Virus record (IMG/VR): IMGVR_UViG_3300027759_004177
Span: 62,001 to 126,000 of that record
DNA length: 64,000 nucleotides
Direction: 5' to 3' (one strand)
The position numbers were made by a program, and so were the translations under genes. Numbering within the stretch: position 1 is the stretch's first letter; each line of letters opens with the position of its first letter. The notes under the pieces are model-generated. The model searched no databases. It saw nothing but the letters and a program-made list of their open reading frames with translations, and was not told the DNA's origin. Shown here one piece after another: positions 9,872-44,575 of the stretch.

Positions 9872-10012
9872 AGAAAGATCCTTTGATTTAGAAAATGTGT
9901 AACTAGATATAAGTTTACACTGAGCTAATAAAAAATGCAAGTGGAAAAGCAGAACTTTGGTGAAGTTTCAGCGGAACTTTGCTGTAACTAATTTTATTTA
10001 GCTTTTGGCAAT

Positions 10013-10033
10013 AAAAAAGCCCCCGGAGGGGCT
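10013..10033 (-). terminator. terminator ending tmRNA transcript
   Basis: AGCCCC-tccg-GGGGCTTTTTT on minus strand. Confidence 0.8.
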
Positions 10034-10034
10034 G

Positions 10035-10350
10035 GTGGTTTCTGTTACGAGGTATTTCCTACCCTAGGCGCTGTTAGGCGGCCAATGCGAACTGTTCGTC
10101 GTTTGCGTTTACGTTGTTTGCTTTTTACGAGTACTCCTCTCGTGTTGCCATCTCTTCTAGCTCACCATGTCGAAACTGTTTCATCCCCATCAAAAAGGCT
10201 CTTGACAATCCAGAATAGATAGTTGGCAACAACTGCTATGCCCCAGAGATAAATCCAATGCCAGTCGTTAAACATAAAAGTCCTTTTGGTGGAGATGCTG
10301 GGTTCTGCCCCCAGGTCCACAGCGCCTTCGATTTGAAGGAATTACAACAA
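10035..10350 (-). ncRNA. ssrA: two-piece (circularly permuted) tmRNA; tag (A)ANDEQFALAA
   Basis: acceptor piece ends CUGGG-GGCAGAA-CCCAG-CAUCUCC-ACCA at 10287; coding piece starts GGGGAUG at 10188 (G3:U70 pair); tag frame 10106..10074; outer ends approximate. Confidence 0.92.
10162..10275 (-). CDS. putative 37-aa membrane peptide in the tmRNA intervening segment
   Basis: AAGGA SD; MFNDWHWIYLWGIAVVANYLFWIVKSLFDGDETVSTW. Confidence 0.45.
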   Translation of the reverse strand: MFNDWHWIYLWGIAVVANYLFWIVKSLFDGDETVSTW

Positions 10351-10369
10351 TATCGTTATTATATACTTA

Positions 10370-11167
10370 TTAAGTTTCTGCGTCAACCTTGGGTTTGGTA
10401 CGCCATTTTGCCAATTCGGATTCAAACTTTTGTTCTAGATCTGCGGTGATAACGGCCTGATCAACCTGTTGTCTTAGTTCATTAGCAAACGTTTCCAATT
10501 GGCCAATGTCGCCCATGTACTTGAACGTGTCTGTGACACGTCTAGTATCGTACGCATCCATGATTATGTGATAGCGGTCCTGATTTGAATCATTGCGAAT
10601 TTGATGCCAGACATTTACCCAAACCATGTAGGCCGTACCAGGTTCCATATACAACGTTTCTCCTTCGGCTGTGAAGGTACATGCAGGATTTGTAATCAGG
10701 GGTATGTGGATACGTGCCATATATTGGTTTTCACCACAATCTCTATGCACCAGACTCTTGCTACCAGCCTTCAGACAAGTTACCCTGGCTCGACGTGGTG
10801 TCAACCCAAATGCCTCAATTTGATCGATGGTCCGAGCAATCTCACCGCAATAGCCCTGTGTGGGTTTCTTGTATTCTAACGAATGTGCAATGTTAAAATA
10901 TTTCAAGGTAGTGTAATTGTTGGCATTTTTAGGAAAGAATACTTCTTCGATAGTGGTGCCTTCTTCGTTTTGAAAAAATTCCCAACCGTCTTGCCAGGCA
11001 CCAGTTTGACTCTGCAAACTCCATCCGCCAAATCCTTTATAGGCATCGGTTTCATATTCTTCGCCTTGCACGACTTGATTGCCCAAAGTAAACACATGAT
11101 TTTTTACATCGGCTACTAACCGGTCATGATCGTATTTGATAAAATTTAATTTTTCATAGAATGACAT
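10370..11167 (-). CDS. aspartyl/asparaginyl beta-hydroxylase-like Fe/2OG oxygenase
   Basis: VHRD...RIHIPLITN...WHQIRNDS..DRYHII. Confidence 0.8.
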   Translation of the reverse strand: MSFYEKLNFIKYDHDRLVADVKNHVFTLGNQVVQGEEYETDAYKGFGGWSLQSQTGAWQDGWEFFQNEEGTTIEEVFFPKNANNYTTLKYFNIAHSLEYKKPTQGYCGEIARTIDQIEAFGLTPRRARVTCLKAGSKSLVHRDCGENQYMARIHIPLITNPACTFTAEGETLYMEPGTAYMVWVNVWHQIRNDSNQDRYHIIMDAYDTRRVTDTFKYMGDIGQLETFANELRQQVDQAVITADLEQKFESELAKWRTKPKVDAET

Positions 11168-13539: not shown

Positions 13540-13934
13540 AGACGTGATTGGAACTCCACCATGGGTGTGGTATCTATGCCTTCTGCCACTACCTGGTCCA
13601 CAGGCTCGGGTATGTTGCGTGCCTGGGCCCACTCTCGGTATTGTGCCACGATAGGACTGGGAGTGTAGTCTATTCCGTCATGCGGATTCTTTAGTGCGTC
13701 ATAAAATTCGTTGCCATACACGATGTAGTTTATCAAAGGATCGCCGGGTAGCAAAAACACTTTGTCTAATATGACCGGGTATTGGTGACACATCTCAAAG
13801 AAACTGTTTCGTTCATCCTCAGTGAGATTGAACACAATGGCGCCAACTTCGGTGTCTAAAAAATACTTGACATACCGGTTGTAATCTTCAGCATCAAAGT
13901 TAACTGGTTGTTTGCCTACAATAATATCGCTCAT
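13536..13934 (-). CDS. hypothetical protein
   Basis: ATGA overlaps on both sides in operon. Confidence 0.75.
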   Translation of the reverse strand: MSDIIVGKQPVNFDAEDYNRYVKYFLDTEVGAIVFNLTEDERNSFFEMCHQYPVILDKVFLLPGDPLINYIVYGNEFYDALKNPHDGIDYTPSPIVAQYREWAQARNIPEPVDQVVAEGIDTTPMVEFQSRL

Positions 13935-14569
13935 AAGTCCTTAATCCTTAACATACTGTTTATAAAACTTTTCAACACCAACCGATCTTTGCTGTCCTTG
14001 GTAAGGTCATGTTTAAAATCTGTAGTCAGGTTTACTCTACATCTCCCCAGGTTCATCTTGACTCCGTGTAGTACATATGATGGCAAAAATATCATGTCGC
14101 CATTTTTAGGGGTTATTGTTTTAATTTCAGTTCGGTGTTCACCGACTCGGCCGGTATCAACATAATAAAATTCACCACCAACATCTGGGCCCTGTATGTA
14201 GTAGCTACAGGCAATAGACGAATCAGGGTGTGCATGGAGTTCTATACGTTCTCCAGCTGTGTTTACATTAAGCCAGGCTCCCGACACAACAAATTCAGCT
14301 CGTTGTGTTGTTGGCATGTATTGATTGACAACCTCAGTGATTACCTCGGTCTTAAAATCAATCAATTCTTGTATACAGGGACTATCATAATCTAATAGAG
14401 ATTCTTTCCCTGAGGCTTCGTCAAACGTGCTGGCAATTTCGTAAAGTTCTCGTAACAACTCTTGATTAAATGATTCTGTAAACGGAGTCTTTTGGTGCCA
14501 CACCGGGCACTCCCACAACGAAGATTTCACACTACTGGCGAAAATACTTTCGTCAATGACCGTGGTCAT
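13931..14569 (-). CDS. putative 2OG-Fe(II) oxygenase (TIGR02466-like)
   Basis: WLNV...HAHP...YY...GDMIFLPSYVLHGV..N...R. Confidence 0.85.
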   Translation of the reverse strand: MTTVIDESIFASSVKSSLWECPVWHQKTPFTESFNQELLRELYEIASTFDEASGKESLLDYDSPCIQELIDFKTEVITEVVNQYMPTTQRAEFVVSGAWLNVNTAGERIELHAHPDSSIACSYYIQGPDVGGEFYYVDTGRVGEHRTEIKTITPKNGDMIFLPSYVLHGVKMNLGRCRVNLTTDFKHDLTKDSKDRLVLKSFINSMLRIKDL

Positions 14570-15474
14570 TTTGCAGCCCTTTGTCCCACACGTTTAAAAC
14601 CAAAGCCTTTAAAGAACGAATAGATTCCAGCACCCGCCAAGGAGGTGTAATAGCTTAGATAAAACAACGCCCACATGGTGTACAAGGTTGGCAAACGATG
14701 GCGGCGTGACTTTTTGCCAACACGTGGCAAGCTGTCAACAAATCGACAAATAGGTTTACCAATCTCCATCAAGATACGACCTTGAACATTGTCTTCGGGC
14801 AATGCACCCATCAAGTAGGCCATGTGTTCTGACCATGGCGTACCAATCTTGATGGCCATGTCCGTGATACGATCTTTTTGTCGTGCCGCACGTTTTTCTG
14901 GGTCAGTGATCCAGGGCATGTACACCGGTCCTTTGCCGTCCATCCAGGCAGTTACAATTCTTGCCCAACGCACATAGCCGCGATACACTCGGCGATCTTT
15001 TTTGCGTAGCCATTGCCCGTACATTTGATCCGCGGCCCAGATGTTTTGATTCATTAGACCAAAGTCGTATAACTTGGCACAAATAATCTTGGAGCAGTTG
15101 CAGGCACAGTTACAGGCATAAGATGTGGTTGTACTGGTACAGTTATATGTGCAGGCACAGTTACAGTTGTTCTGTAACCAACTCTGTGTGTCACAGTTGC
15201 CACAATTGATTTGACCAGTTATGAGACAATTTGTGCAATTTATGTTACCGCAGTTGCAATTTGCAGTACAGTTACCATTGGCACAGTTGGCGCCATCGGC
15301 AGTATTTTGGAAATAGGCTTTGTTATAAAATGCCGTCATACTGGGATTGGCCGGACGCTGGTCGCTACGAATTAATCCATTGAGGAAATTTAAATCTGTA
15401 GAGAAAGTGGCAGCCTGCCCAATTTCGGTGCTGACGTCGCCAACTGCAATTTGTCCGGATGCTGGTAGTGTCAT
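14566..15474 (-). CDS. Asn-Cys repeat protein: tail-tip-type N-terminus, NC-rich core, KIIC domain, C-terminal TM
   Basis: MTLPASGQIAVGDVSTEIG...SMTAFYNK; 16 Cys in aa 64-127, 13 as NC; hydrophobic then basic C-terminus. Confidence 0.8.
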   Translation of the reverse strand: MTLPASGQIAVGDVSTEIGQAATFSTDLNFLNGLIRSDQRPANPSMTAFYNKAYFQNTADGANCANGNCTANCNCGNINCTNCLITGQINCGNCDTQSWLQNNCNCACTYNCTSTTTSYACNCACNCSKIICAKLYDFGLMNQNIWAADQMYGQWLRKKDRRVYRGYVRWARIVTAWMDGKGPVYMPWITDPEKRAARQKDRITDMAIKIGTPWSEHMAYLMGALPEDNVQGRILMEIGKPICRFVDSLPRVGKKSRRHRLPTLYTMWALFYLSYYTSLAGAGIYSFFKGFGFKRVGQRAAK

Positions 15475-15486
15475 GGTAAATTCTCT

Positions 15487-16941
15487 TTATTGAGTATTTA
15501 TGACTGATTCCACCCGACTTTGACCATACACTTCAATTCCTTCGATCTCGCCAACTACTTCACTGACAATTTTGATAGGTATGACTCGTTTCTTTTCAGT
15601 TTCTGTGTGTTCATATATGGTACCAAACACGTCTTGCCGTTCCAAGGGCAACTCGTCCTGTTTGATCAGGGTGGGAATATAACCCGTTATTTTCTCTACA
15701 GCCAGGGCAAACAAGGCCACATTGTCCGAATAGCTGTTGGCACAGCTGACATCCCAGAATTCTTTGTCCAAGAACATGCAGGCACCTTTGCAAAGGTGTA
15801 GTACCGGGCACTTGGGACATTCAGCACGATTTGACCAGTGTGTTGATGTTTTGATAGCCACGTTGTCATAATCGTCTAAATTACCGCCCAAATGGCTTTC
15901 TCCGTTTTTGCCGGTTTCTAGACTGCTGACGTTTTGACAAGTCATCACATTACCACGCAGGTCGATTGCCAACACATGCTCGTCGTCCATGCCGCACTTT
16001 TGTCCTAAGAATTTGGATTCGTCGTGCGCCAGCACGTTTCTAATGAATCCATCGATCTTGTCCAACTGCATCTTGAATCCAATTTGTCCTTGTGTACTAA
16101 AAATATCAGCAAAGGCTGTGCGACGAAATTCAAAATGTTGCTGTTTGGTTTGCAGGCTGTTTTGCATGCCATCAGCATCGTAACTGTCTACAATGCCGCC
16201 TTCGCCCAGAGACACATTGGGGTCTCCTGTGAATTCCACAAACCAGTCATAAATCCGTTTTCTGCTGATGTTTTGTGCATTGAGCATGGGATTAAAGCTA
16301 AAGCCTTTTTTGAGTCTGCTCATCTGACGATAAAATCCCAGGATCTGTTTTTTCTTTTCGGGATCCGCAAACGGATCAGGTCCACGCACATGTTGTCCAG
16401 GACCATCGTGGCTGATTGATACTGTAAAGTTCAATTTCATTAGCCAATCAATTATTTCCTCATTGAGTATGCTGCCATTGGTAATCACACTGAACTGTGG
16501 TTTATGTTTCCAGCCACTAAATTTTTCCAAGATAGCTTCAGCCAAAGGTTTGAGTGTTTTCCAGTAAACAAATGGTTCTCCACCCCAGAACTCAATCTTG
16601 AGGCCTTGGGTTTCATCAAACTCTAGCACTTTGAATTTTTCTAAAAAAACGTCAATGTCTTTCTTTGAAGTTTCTGGAGCACGTTCCACGAACTTCTGTG
16701 AGCAGTAATCGCAAGAGTAATTACAGCTGAGTCCCAACTGTATCTTTAATAGCTGTATCGCACGGCTTTTCTTCAATGGACGATCGCGATCAAAAGCAAC
16801 ATATGGCTTCAAATTGTGTTTGTGTATCTGTGGATATTCAAATACCGTACCATCCTCACTTTTTAAAGTGTTGGTTTCGTTATCGTAATAAAAGATTTTT
16901 TTGTCTGCGGCTGAACGCTCAGCATGAATTTCAAATAGCAT
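15487..16941 (-). CDS. radical SAM/SPASM-domain maturase
   Basis: CNYSCDYC, FWGGEP, ITNG, SISHDG, CG...G.V..C and CPKCPVLHLCKGAC...C SPASM cysteines. Confidence 0.92.
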   Translation of the reverse strand: MLFEIHAERSAADKKIFYYDNETNTLKSEDGTVFEYPQIHKHNLKPYVAFDRDRPLKKSRAIQLLKIQLGLSCNYSCDYCSQKFVERAPETSKKDIDVFLEKFKVLEFDETQGLKIEFWGGEPFVYWKTLKPLAEAILEKFSGWKHKPQFSVITNGSILNEEIIDWLMKLNFTVSISHDGPGQHVRGPDPFADPEKKKQILGFYRQMSRLKKGFSFNPMLNAQNISRKRIYDWFVEFTGDPNVSLGEGGIVDSYDADGMQNSLQTKQQHFEFRRTAFADIFSTQGQIGFKMQLDKIDGFIRNVLAHDESKFLGQKCGMDDEHVLAIDLRGNVMTCQNVSSLETGKNGESHLGGNLDDYDNVAIKTSTHWSNRAECPKCPVLHLCKGACMFLDKEFWDVSCANSYSDNVALFALAVEKITGYIPTLIKQDELPLERQDVFGTIYEHTETEKKRVIPIKIVSEVVGEIEGIEVYGQSRVESVINTQ

Positions 16942-17075
16942 AAACTTCCTTGAATGTACTAGTACTTATCGCTTGCTGTACGGCAAAGATGTTTTATTGA
17001 TCAATCCAGTCGTCGACCGAGATTAAGAGATAAATTATAATGGCTACAAAGATACCAAATGCTATCATACCCATC

Positions 17076-17246
17076 TTAATTGTACCCTTTCACTACTTTG
17101 CCATCAGTTTTGGGATTTCCTCGTGACATAACATCTTCTAATTTTTTGGCACGATCACGTTCGGGCGGTAATGGACCACAACCCAAACGATCCCACTCGT
17201 CTTTGGAGTAGTAATATTGTTCGACTGGTTTTTTAGATTGTTCCAT
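17076..17246 (-). CDS. 56-aa hypothetical protein
   Basis: MEQSKKPVEQYYYSKDEWDRLGCGPLPPE; TAAATA 5 nt upstream. Confidence 0.6.
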   Translation of the reverse strand: MEQSKKPVEQYYYSKDEWDRLGCGPLPPERDRAKKLEDVMSRGNPKTDGKVVKGYN

Positions 17247-17257
17247 AATGGTATTTA

Positions 17258-17445
17258 GTAATGCTCTGCGAACCCCGGTGGTAATTATACCGTATTGCTA
17301 CGGCCTCCACCCACTCCACGACGGGTTCCGTTAACGCATTGCCAGCGGCCTTTTGGTTTAAAGACTACCACCCACGGGGCACGACCACCGTTTCTCCTTC
17401 GTGCGGGTCACACTAGCCCAGCGTTACCCGGGCGGGTCCTTTAAA
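17258..17445 (-). ncRNA. candidate structured ncRNA (unassigned)
   Basis: GC-rich intergenic segment with nested helices GCCCGG/CUGGGC, GCACGA/UCGUGC, GAACCC/GGGUUC, GGUGG/CCACC and CCGUA-GCAA-UACGG. Confidence 0.55.
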
Positions 17446-17562
17446 ACTATATTTTAGCACACTTACCGGCTTTCGCCTTGCTACCAGAATAATCGGTTCG
17501 GGTAAATGCACTAAAGTATAGTAAGGGGCTAACACGTCTCCCGACGATGCCCTTACGGATTA

Positions 17563-17880
17563 TTACTCAGCTACAGCTTCTGCACGAGCCTTGATTGCTT
17601 CAAGACTTGGCTTGACTTTGGTTGCCTTGGCACTCACAGAGCCATTGTACTTGGCATCAGCTGCATCGATAGCGGCACGATAGTCAGCATTGGCATACAA
17701 ATCCGTGGTCTTCAAGAAAGTGACCAATGCTGGCTTAGACATTGCCTTAGGCAATTCCATAAGATTGATATCGCTATCAGTCTTGGCCAAGATCTTGATA
17801 CGGGTCATGTCGCCGGCAAAACGCACCTTGTACTGACCTTTAGTCTTGCTAACACCACCAACTTTGAACAATTTATCCAT
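17563..17880 (-). CDS. conserved phage hypothetical protein
   Basis: GGAG SD, promoter at 17949-17977. Confidence 0.8.
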   Translation of the reverse strand: MDKLFKVGGVSKTKGQYKVRFAGDMTRIKILAKTDSDINLMELPKAMSKPALVTFLKTTDLYANADYRAAIDAADAKYNGSVSAKATKVKPSLEAIKARAEAVAE

Positions 17881-17948
17881 TTGTAAAACTCCATTTTTAA
17901 GTTAAAAAATACTACAATTTATGCTGGACACACTCCAACATATTTCAT

Positions 17949-42513: not shown

Positions 42514-44565
42514 TTATTTCTCATGAGCTATGAATTCCCCATTCCAGTTTGCTGGTAGGTCTTGTTGCTTCATAAAGTCGCAACGTTCAATCCATATCTT
42601 ATAGTACTTGTCCATTTGTCCACCAAAGTTGCCTGTTAACTTTTTGCACATGGCGGCCGCTTCATTGAATTTTTTCTGACGGTACAGGTCATGCATTACA
42701 TCGTGTGCTTCCTTGTCTTTGCTGTAATCTTCACCTCGAGTACGTAATACTGTATAGATTAAGTCTGCTACTGTCTTGCCTTTTGGTTGTAAGTTATCCA
42801 ACAGCAAGTAGAAGAAATCATCTTTAGTTCTGTTGTATGTTTCAGCACCGATAATGGCCAACACACCGTAAGCCTTACAACGTGCTTCTAGTCGGGCGGC
42901 TGTACTAACCATGTCACCCAAGATATCATAACTGTGTCGGTCGGTTGAACCCATCTCACCAATGAACCCAACACCTGTGTTACAGCCCCAGCCCATTGCA
43001 GCTGGCGGCAAGCCTTGTGCTTCCATTTCTTTGGTATAAGCATCTACAGCGTCTAACATTTCTAAACCTACTTTGACAATAGTTCTAGCATGATCAGGAT
43101 CGTCTATAGGCGCACCATGAATGTGCATACTTGCATCACCCACATACTTGATAACCATACCCCGGTTGTCCATGATAGGTTTTGAAATAGCATCCATGTA
43201 ACCGTTCATGTATTTGCCTAATCCGCCTACATCATCGCCATAGTGTTCGCCAATTGGTGTAAAGCCACGTAAGTCACTAAACATAACACTTACGTCTTTA
43301 CGCACACCACGTTTGATCAAGTCAGGATCTTTCTGTAACATCTCCACAACTTCTTTTGAACAGTAACCAGCAAACTGTTTCTTTATGGCTTGCTTTTGTA
43401 AGAACTCGCTTACAAACTTAACACCGTAAGCATGAAGGAGAATAACAGTGAGGCCGCCAGCAAGGGCAGTAATGTCAAATAGCCAAGCATTAGCCGTGTA
43501 AACGTACTGAGATACAGGATACAAAATACCAAGAGCGATAACACCAGTAGCAAGTCCAACATATACATACCTCGTTAAAAATAATAATACGATACCTAAA
43601 ACCACAATAGCAATGATCTCAGCACCATCGGCCCAGTCGGGTCTTGATATTGCTGGACGATCTTTGTTGGCAATAACTGTGCCTAATACTGCGGCCTGTA
43701 AATCTTGTGGTAACATTTCGCCCAGGCTTGTGGCTACAGGGTTTGCTAGACCTTGCGCCGACACACCAACAATAACGATTTCACCATCAAAGTCTCGGGG
43801 CAAGTTGGTTAGGCTATAACGCTCTGGTGTCAAGCTCCAGTCAATCCATATACGACTCAAGCTGTCTGTGGTCACAGGACCAAATGCTGGAATTCGCATT
43901 TTCTCAACACCCTGCTCATTGATTTTAACTTGGAAGGTTGAGTCGCCTGCAGCCACACGCATGACTTCCATGGCCAGGCTTGGATACAATCGACCGTTGT
44001 AAGCAACTACCAGTGGCATACGACGCACAACACCGTCAACTTCCGGAAACGTGTTAACAACACCAACTCCGGCAGCGGCCGTTTCTACACTGGGAATGTT
44101 AGCGATAAGCCCCGGATAGGTCACAAACGCATCTAAACCAAATGGTCCAATTACTGCTGATCCTGGAGCTCGTGGTTGATTTCTTGTCGTTGTTGATCCA
44201 ATGCTAGGAAGTACCGTTGGGTATTGTTTTAACGCTTGCACATACGCAGTATCTTGCCCCATACGGTCTTTATCTGGAGTAAGAATATTAAACACAACAA
44301 GACCAGCATTACGTCTGTAAAGGTCTCGAATAATGGCACCGTATGTATCACGGGAAAAAGGAAATTGCCCATATCGTTCTAATGCTTTCTCATCTATGTT
44401 TACTACACTGACCCCGATCGTTTCGGCAGGTCGGCTAGTAACAAGTGTATCGAAATAGCGTAGCCTTACGCTTTCAACAAACATAGGATCTGCAACACGC
44501 AAGCCCACAATGATTGCTAGTGTTAATAGAGCAGTCCAAGGACTGATTAAGATTTTTTTGAACAT
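42514..44565 (-). CDS. CHASE2-domain class III adenylate/guanylate cyclase
   Basis: DGVVRRMPL (CHASE2), 3 TM, FSDLRGFT, KYVGD, GDMVSTAARLE. Confidence 0.93.
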   Translation of the reverse strand: MFKKILISPWTALLTLAIIVGLRVADPMFVESVRLRYFDTLVTSRPAETIGVSVVNIDEKALERYGQFPFSRDTYGAIIRDLYRRNAGLVVFNILTPDKDRMGQDTAYVQALKQYPTVLPSIGSTTTRNQPRAPGSAVIGPFGLDAFVTYPGLIANIPSVETAAAGVGVVNTFPEVDGVVRRMPLVVAYNGRLYPSLAMEVMRVAAGDSTFQVKINEQGVEKMRIPAFGPVTTDSLSRIWIDWSLTPERYSLTNLPRDFDGEIVIVGVSAQGLANPVATSLGEMLPQDLQAAVLGTVIANKDRPAISRPDWADGAEIIAIVVLGIVLLFLTRYVYVGLATGVIALGILYPVSQYVYTANAWLFDITALAGGLTVILLHAYGVKFVSEFLQKQAIKKQFAGYCSKEVVEMLQKDPDLIKRGVRKDVSVMFSDLRGFTPIGEHYGDDVGGLGKYMNGYMDAISKPIMDNRGMVIKYVGDASMHIHGAPIDDPDHARTIVKVGLEMLDAVDAYTKEMEAQGLPPAAMGWGCNTGVGFIGEMGSTDRHSYDILGDMVSTAARLEARCKAYGVLAIIGAETYNRTKDDFFYLLLDNLQPKGKTVADLIYTVLRTRGEDYSKDKEAHDVMHDLYRQKKFNEAAAMCKKLTGNFGGQMDKYYKIWIERCDFMKQQDLPANWNGEFIAHEK

Positions 44566-44575
44566 CAAGTATTTA

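Follow-up and report, generated by a model that had tools for sequence, protein, structure and literature searches.

The locus and its neighbouring genes

The window analysed here is a 64,000-nt stretch (bases 62001-126000) of a 356,865-bp IMG/VR virus record (IMGVR_UViG_3300027759_004177) that CheckV rates as complete. Two ORFs on the minus strand, a 105-aa ORF (17563-17880) and a 56-aa ORF (17076-17246), bracket 316 nt of non-coding DNA, and the 3' 190 nt of this gap is locally GC-rich (0.54-0.57, against about 0.35-0.45 in the flanks). A sequence-only reading had proposed a GC-rich multi-helix RNA without a credible ORF at 17258-17445 on the minus strand, just upstream of an rSAM operon region, and had suggested that it is either a new phage ncRNA or a fragment of a large ornate RNA class. 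We confirmed that a structured RNA element lies where it was proposed: a covariance model built from six homologs places the element, about 188 nt long, at 17257-17444 on the minus strand (191 bits, E about 1e-63), within 1 nt of the proposed coordinates, and nhmmer gives 17260-17442. Folding of the single sequence is weak evidence (z = -2.2 for the 331-nt intergenic stretch on the minus strand and -1.45 on the plus strand), and the case rests on comparison with homologs.

The 105-aa protein has no PHROG or NCBIfam match but is conserved in 53 viral loci at 55-100% identity, of which only about six carry the RNA next to it. A near-consensus promoter-like site (TTGACT-17-TATAAT) precedes its gene on the same strand at 17977-17949, and a weak terminator-like hairpin follows the gene. 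Between this hairpin and the element, at 17451-17459 (minus strand), we read TGCTAAAAT, an extended -10-like sequence 6-8 nt before the first base of the element; it is possibly the element's own promoter, but this is inferred from the sequence only, and a two-hexamer promoter scan did not list it.

On the other side, the RNA ends about 11-15 nt before the ATG of the 56-aa ORF, which has homologs in 55 viral loci, most of them lacking the RNA. This ORF is the first gene of a possible phage-borne peptide-modification (RiPP-like) cluster (13931-17246, minus strand), which also contains a 26-aa hydrophobic ORF (about 16995-17075), an rSAM/SPASM peptide-maturase-like protein (15487-16941; the best NCBIfam hit is PapB-type, below its cut-off), a 302-aa protein with no family and a 2OG-Fe(II) oxygenase (13931-14569). 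The cluster accompanies the RNA only in this small clade, so the position of the RNA before the rSAM operon, although true in this window, is incidental.

A search of the whole window against Rfam 15 (4227 models) at gathering score, together with ARAGORN, found a single RNA gene, a permuted (two-piece) tmRNA of the beta-proteobacterial type at 9983-10400 on the minus strand (Rfam hit at 10012-10400; RF01850 144.5 bits, RF04321 133.7 bits) with the tag peptide ANDEQFALAA. It lies 6.9 kb downstream of the element on the same strand, and in three other loci a tmRNA lies 1.9-2.5 kb downstream of the element. For the element itself there is no Rfam match: the region 16800-17900 searched at E<=10 gives only a chance snoRNA hit inside the ORF, and 14 homologous loci searched at E<=5 give tRNAs and tRNA-derived noise only.

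Homologs and covariation

The first relatives were collected from loci encoding homologs of the two flanking proteins, and an alignment of six sequences already showed 17 compensated pairs. A 25-base pattern taken from three invariant blocks matches at least 119 IMG/VR contigs. The same pattern matches only two places in one genome each of 185,579 bacterial and archaeal species, where we estimate that about one match is expected by chance (for a pattern of roughly 40 bits in 596 Gb), and neither is matched by the covariance model or the HMM. The covariance model matches 82 loci at 60-237 bits, and nhmmer gives 133 hits, with 102 unique sequences. There is one copy in the genome of the window. 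No copy was found by blastn of the window element and of a typical homolog against 50,697 deposited phage genomes, and the covariance model has no match in bacteriophage T4 (whole genome, E<=1), Methylophilales phage Melnitz or Pelagibacter phage HTVC008M. The family is patchy: out of five related large genomes, one has a divergent copy and a 97%-complete one has none, so the RNA is a dispensable, accessory gene.

Eight nested helices were scored on 72 distinct sequences (element position n corresponds to window coordinate 17445-n): Pa (12-17/24-29), Pb (32-36/40-44), Pc (54-57/68-71), Pd (80-84/93-97), Pf (98-100/108-110), Pg (117-122/170-175), Ph (131-134/164-167) and Pe (141-146/151-156). 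In this test 93.4% of cells are paired, against 76.4% when partners are shuffled; 31 of 47 pairs show changes on both sides, none of 500 shuffles reaches the observed values, and sliding the partners drops the pairing to 34-49%. G-U pairs that would be C-A on the other strand fix the minus strand as the RNA strand. Short ORFs overlap the element on both strands, but no conserved ORF is present, and the lengths of homologs differ by amounts that are not multiples of three (188 against 225-227 nt). A mutual-information scan and targeted counts on the 102 unique sequences add tertiary contacts, which are described below together with the helices.

The 5' lead ACCC (17434-17437; ACGU in most homologs) contributes its last three bases to a short closing helix P1 (9-11 with 47-49, i.e. 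with 17396-17398), in which one C-G pair is invariant in 102 out of 102 sequences and the second pair switches between G.U (84 sequences) and C-G (15); a different register for this lead/joiner helix was paired in only 16% of cells and was rejected. Hairpin Pa (17416-17433; GCCCGG/CUGGGC) covaries at all six pairs. Hairpin Pb (17401-17413; three of five stem pairs covary) has an invariant loop ACC(C). It is followed by a conserved joiner, GAAGGAGAA (17392-17400; G-AUGAGAA in most homologs), whose first part is the 3' strand of P1; G49-A53 are invariant in the 102 unique homologs, although one 80-bit homolog that was not in this alignment has AUAA instead. Hairpin Pc (17374-17391) has three covarying stem pairs, and its loop kisses the Pa loop (AUCA/UGAU, GUCA/UGAC, and ACG/CGU in the subtype of this window): pair 21:65 is G-C in 44 sequences and A-U in 32, and the mean loop complementarity is 3.78, against 3.21 +/- 0.07 when partners are swapped between sequences.

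The heptamer GGGUGGU (17367-17373) is invariant at six positions in 102 out of 102 sequences (position 75 is U in 97 and C in five) and is the shared strand of two pseudoknots, both 100% paired: PK1, between the Pb loop ACCC and GGGU (A-U in 97 sequences and G-C in five), and PK2, between GGU and the ACC (17355-17357) of the loop of hairpin Pd (17348-17365; four of five pairs covary). A looser pattern search for GGGC variants gave nine true ones, all of which carry changed Pb and Pd loops, besides about 13 chance hits in GC-rich coding DNA. The invariant strand bridges two hairpin loops, an arrangement that would stack Pb, PK1, PK2 and Pd into one rod (this stacking is inference). Pf (17335-17347) is a 3-bp stem with a C-G to U-A switch in 17 out of 102 sequences and an invariant 7-nt loop, UGGCAAU, that resembles a T-loop.

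The 3' domain (17270-17328) consists of Pg (17323-17328 with 17270-17275; five of six pairs covary), Ph (17311-17314 with 17278-17281; two of four), a conserved internal loop GUGGAR/AUAAUUA and the variable Pe (17289-17304; five of six), which in this window and a few other loci is a short hairpin with a GCAA tetraloop, but in many homologs carries a K-turn-like GUGAUGA...CUGA extension of up to about 90 nt. A conserved 3' tail, GCAGAGCA (17262-17269), contains a near-invariant AGCA. Four signals point to base triples and non-canonical pairs: base 79 (17366) tracks the Pd pair 83:94 (17362:17351), base 71 tracks base 87, positions 135 and 160 switch between G/A and A/G, and tail base 179 (17266) tracks Pg base 171 (17274), the two being G/G in 76 sequences and A/A in 14. 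More than 50 unpaired positions are near-invariant.

Among the helices proposed by the sequence-only reading, four were confirmed (GCCCGG/CUGGGC, ACCC/GGGU, which is PK1, GAACCC/GGGUUC, which is Pg, and CCGUA-GCAA-UACGG, which is Pe) and three were not supported, with observed values equal to shuffled ones. GCACGA/UCGUGC is paired in only 43% of cells and conflicts with the covarying Pb and Pc; AAUGC/GCAUU has no compensatory change and conflicts with the covarying Pf; and GGUGG/CCACC is out of register, as the covarying register (GNGG/CCNC) lies 4 nt further 5'. Our first covariance model was built on a partly wrong structure; its pairing of the 5' GAAC with the 3' GGGUUC was wrong, and the true partner is the internal GAACCC.

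Genomic context and expression of the family

Most relatives of the element are found inside tRNA arrays. Out of 104 unique loci, 90 contain tRNA genes and 76 contain five or more, and all 1,028 tRNAs within 3 kb lie on the strand of the element. An upstream tRNA ends 1-4 nt before the conserved lead in 43 of 99 loci, and a downstream tRNA starts 2-4 nt after the conserved AGCA tail in 18 of 93 loci. More than half of the copies, including the one in this window, have no abutting tRNA yet keep the whole core; in these cases the flanks are diverse (hairpins ending in ACCA, promoters, or ORFs with Shine-Dalgarno sites). Where no tRNA gene is called upstream, several loci have, in the 60 nt upstream of the element, a short hairpin followed by ACCA just before it, which may be a tRNA-minihelix-like processing signal. 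In the window's own genome the 11 tRNA genes lie at 183-202 kb, while the element is at 79.3-79.4 kb.

No protein family is a constant neighbour. Clustering of neighbouring proteins shows that the commonest family is found in 17 of 111 loci; the recurrent ones are a phosphoesterase, a peptidase, a MazG-like NTP pyrophosphohydrolase and a dCMP deaminase, which look like ordinary neighbours of tRNA arrays. Downstream genes differ between loci.

Twenty public sequencing runs, mostly freshwater metagenomes and including five metatranscriptomes, contain the 1-kb stretch. In four RNA runs, examined as assembled contigs only, contigs identical to the window cover the 105-aa gene at word depths of 2-14, whereas contigs 90-97% alike, which run on into the sequences of other family members, cover the most conserved core (17302-17373) at depths of 9-1051; the exact sequence of this phage's element was not recovered. 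This is consistent with very abundant homologous RNAs in lakes, but contigs cannot give ends, strand or true level, and carry-over of DNA into RNA libraries is not excluded. One RNA-library contig of a relative, with a loose end at window position 17373, runs into Illumina adapter sequence about 20 nt beyond the heptamer, inside the joiner (...GAAGUGG), perhaps due to an RNA 5' end, a reverse-transcription stop at the 5' pseudoknotted domain or an assembly artefact.

Interpretation and comparison with known RNAs

We interpret the element as a stand-alone gene for a compact, heavily cross-braced non-coding RNA, belonging to a family confined, as far as sampled, to uncultivated and mostly freshwater jumbo phages. 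What the analysis shows is the fold (a 5' domain in which P1 closes a three-way junction with Pa and Pb, the Pa and Pc loops kiss and the Pb and Pd loops pair with one invariant strand, followed by Pf, and a 3' arm Pg-Ph-Pe with a tail that tracks Pg), the near-invariance of its unpaired bases and the location of the gene, in most phages, within a tRNA array, on the tRNA strand and flush with the neighbouring tRNAs. Its transcription and processing are inferred from these flush junctions: the RNA would be co-transcribed with the tRNAs, RNase P would free its 3' end by cutting the 5' end of the next tRNA, and 3'-end maturation of the preceding tRNA would free its 5' end, which would yield an abundant, stable RNA acting in trans. 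In this phage, which has no adjacent tRNA in the window, the gene has moved between protein genes in this view, and is probably transcribed from the promoter-like site before the 105-aa gene, from its own -10-like site, or from both. We are fairly confident of this part of the interpretation as a whole, and consider it very likely that this is a real family of trans-acting RNAs released from tRNA transcripts.

More speculatively, given the constant company of tRNAs and the tRNA-end-like ACC/GGU pairings, the RNA most likely serves the phage's tRNA and translation take-over module as a scaffold, decoy or sensor that binds a conserved host or phage component; that its partner belongs to the tRNA or translation machinery is only a tentative guess, as this link rests on gene neighbourhood and motif resemblance alone. 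RNase P and T-box RNAs use pairings of this kind (GGU/UGGN-type strands paired to ACC) to hold tRNA 3' ends, but here the ACC partners are internal hairpin loops, and the architectures, gene context and Rfam models of these RNAs do not match. A possible but doubtful extension is that the RNA is a new functional class, either a natural ribozyme or a reader of tRNA 3' ends, in which the GGGUGGU strand would exchange its two internal ACC loops for the ACCA ends of uncharged or damaged tRNAs; giant phages could then sense, shield or sequester tRNAs during infection, for example against host tRNA-cutting defences.

A self-cleaving or otherwise catalytic RNA that helps to cut tRNA polycistrons, for example at its own 5' edge to free the 3' end of the preceding tRNA, remains possible but is unlikely. 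The element directly follows a tRNA 3' CCA in the 43 of 99 loci mentioned above, its many near-invariant unpaired bases and several pseudoknots are typical of ribozymes, and HDV-like theta ribozymes are found next to phage tRNAs, where they are proposed to take part in tRNA end formation (PMC10879173). However, no Rfam ribozyme model matches, the spacing to the CCA varies from 1 to 4 nt, many copies have no tRNA to process, and at 160-260 nt the RNA is far larger than known 5'-edge cleavers, theta ribozymes included. Its helix order (P1-Pa-Pb-Pc-heptamer-Pd) does not fit the nested double pseudoknot, beginning at the cleavage site, of HDV-like ribozymes, and the fold does not appear to map onto the glmS, hatchet, hammerhead or twister architectures. 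Short resemblances to the hammerhead (GAUGAG), twister (GGUCCC...) and T-box (GGGUGGUACCG) cores fall in covarying, variable stems or lack the rest of the core. A ligand-binding aptamer, acting either as a riboswitch for the downstream rSAM/peptide operon or in trans as a sponge for a small molecule, is similarly unlikely. The conservation and pseudoknots are at riboswitch-like levels, the element here ends shortly before a start codon, and in several other loci an ORF with a Shine-Dalgarno sequence follows within 15-30 nt, but the downstream genes are unrelated across loci, the next feature is often a tRNA, no expression platform is conserved (there is no terminator and no Shine-Dalgarno-sequestering helix), no Rfam riboswitch matches, and the trans-sponge version has no direct evidence.

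It is very unlikely that the element is a fragment or domain of a large ornate RNA such as GOLLD or ROOL, or a degenerate RNase P RNA, T-box or tRNA-like RNA, although it shares the tRNA-island context of GOLLD and ROOL (PMC12286853), GGGUGGU(AC) resembles the T-box core, GGU:ACC resembles the RNase P L15-CCA pairing and Pf has a T-loop-like loop. In relatives both ends are set by abutting tRNA genes, so the unit of about 160-260 nt is complete. The mutual-information scan finds no helix joining the 5' and 3' ends, like the terminal P1 of RNase P RNA, and no pair set like its long-range P4 between CR-I and CR-V, and no RNase P model matches at the weak-similarity limits used for all families. 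The T-box features of an antiterminator/terminator switch and a downstream aminoacyl-tRNA synthetase or amino-acid gene are absent (there is no terminator alternative, and tRNAs or unrelated ORFs follow), with no RF00230 hit. The signature of bacterial tRNA mimics (a 5-8-bp acceptor-like helix joined directly to a 5-bp stem with a 7-nt UUYRANY loop) is not found either, as Pf has only a 3-bp stem and no adjoining acceptor-like helix. Finally, a chance GC-rich spacer, a protein-coding remnant or a DNA-level signal can be excluded for practical purposes by the compensatory changes in 31 pairs, the strand-specific G-U pairs, the length differences and the conservation across at least 119 contigs with otherwise different flanks. 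The interpretation offered by the sequence-only reading is partly supported: a new phage ncRNA is supported, whereas a fragment of a large ornate RNA is not.

Phage tRNA islands are already known to hold enigmatic, abundant structured RNAs (GOLLD, ROOL, T4 RNA C and D) with unsolved roles; this family adds a small, well-defined member, with eight covarying helices and at least four tertiary contacts, carried by phage genomes of up to about 357 kb. By context the closest are GOLLD and ROOL, which are phage- and prophage-encoded, often near tRNA islands, highly structured with pseudoknots, without a known protein partner and sometimes very abundant (PMC12286853), but they are about 500-800 nt or more, have a different helix layout, and their Rfam models do not match. 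ROOL and GOLLD have been found to form oligomers. Literature searches for the conserved sequence strings and for descriptions of such an RNA found nothing, although the motif may be contained in the catalogue of unnamed IMG/VR candidate RNAs (about 10,000, or roughly 8,500, candidates) of PMC10690425. Conservation at this level usually marks catalysis or specific molecular recognition, and finding the partner of the RNA could show what giant phages do with their tRNA arrays beyond supplying codons. At about 190 nt in its shortest natural forms the RNA suits chemical probing, crystallography and cryo-EM, and the alignment of 102 unique sequences (82 of them in the alignment on which the corrected structure was scored) and the first covariance model could seed an Rfam entry.

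RNA C and RNA D of bacteriophage T4 (species 1 and 2 stable RNAs) are also small stable RNAs encoded in a phage tRNA cluster, with roles that remain unknown (PMC3014915). T4 rnaD begins 1 nt after tRNA-Arg with AAUGAGAA plus a hairpin (NC_000866, 2149-2173, minus strand), which resembles the joiner plus Pc of the element over 24 nt (7.6 bits with filters off, E about 0.02 in 5.5 kb), but this is probably chance, as the whole-genome search of T4 found nothing. By our reading of the sequences, T4 RNA C shows a T-arm-like hairpin and RNA D ends in CCA, and the RNA described here shows neither. The nearest cultured relatives found, through one protein, are filed in Kyanoviridae, and a kinship to T4-like phages is our tentative reading. 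This protein (684 aa; 42514-44568, minus strand) is 45% identical to a protein of Methylophilales phage Melnitz annotated with an adenylate/guanylate cyclase catalytic domain and 36% identical to one of Pelagibacter phage HTVC008M, suggesting a distant link to those myophages and possibly a betaproteobacterial methylotroph host.
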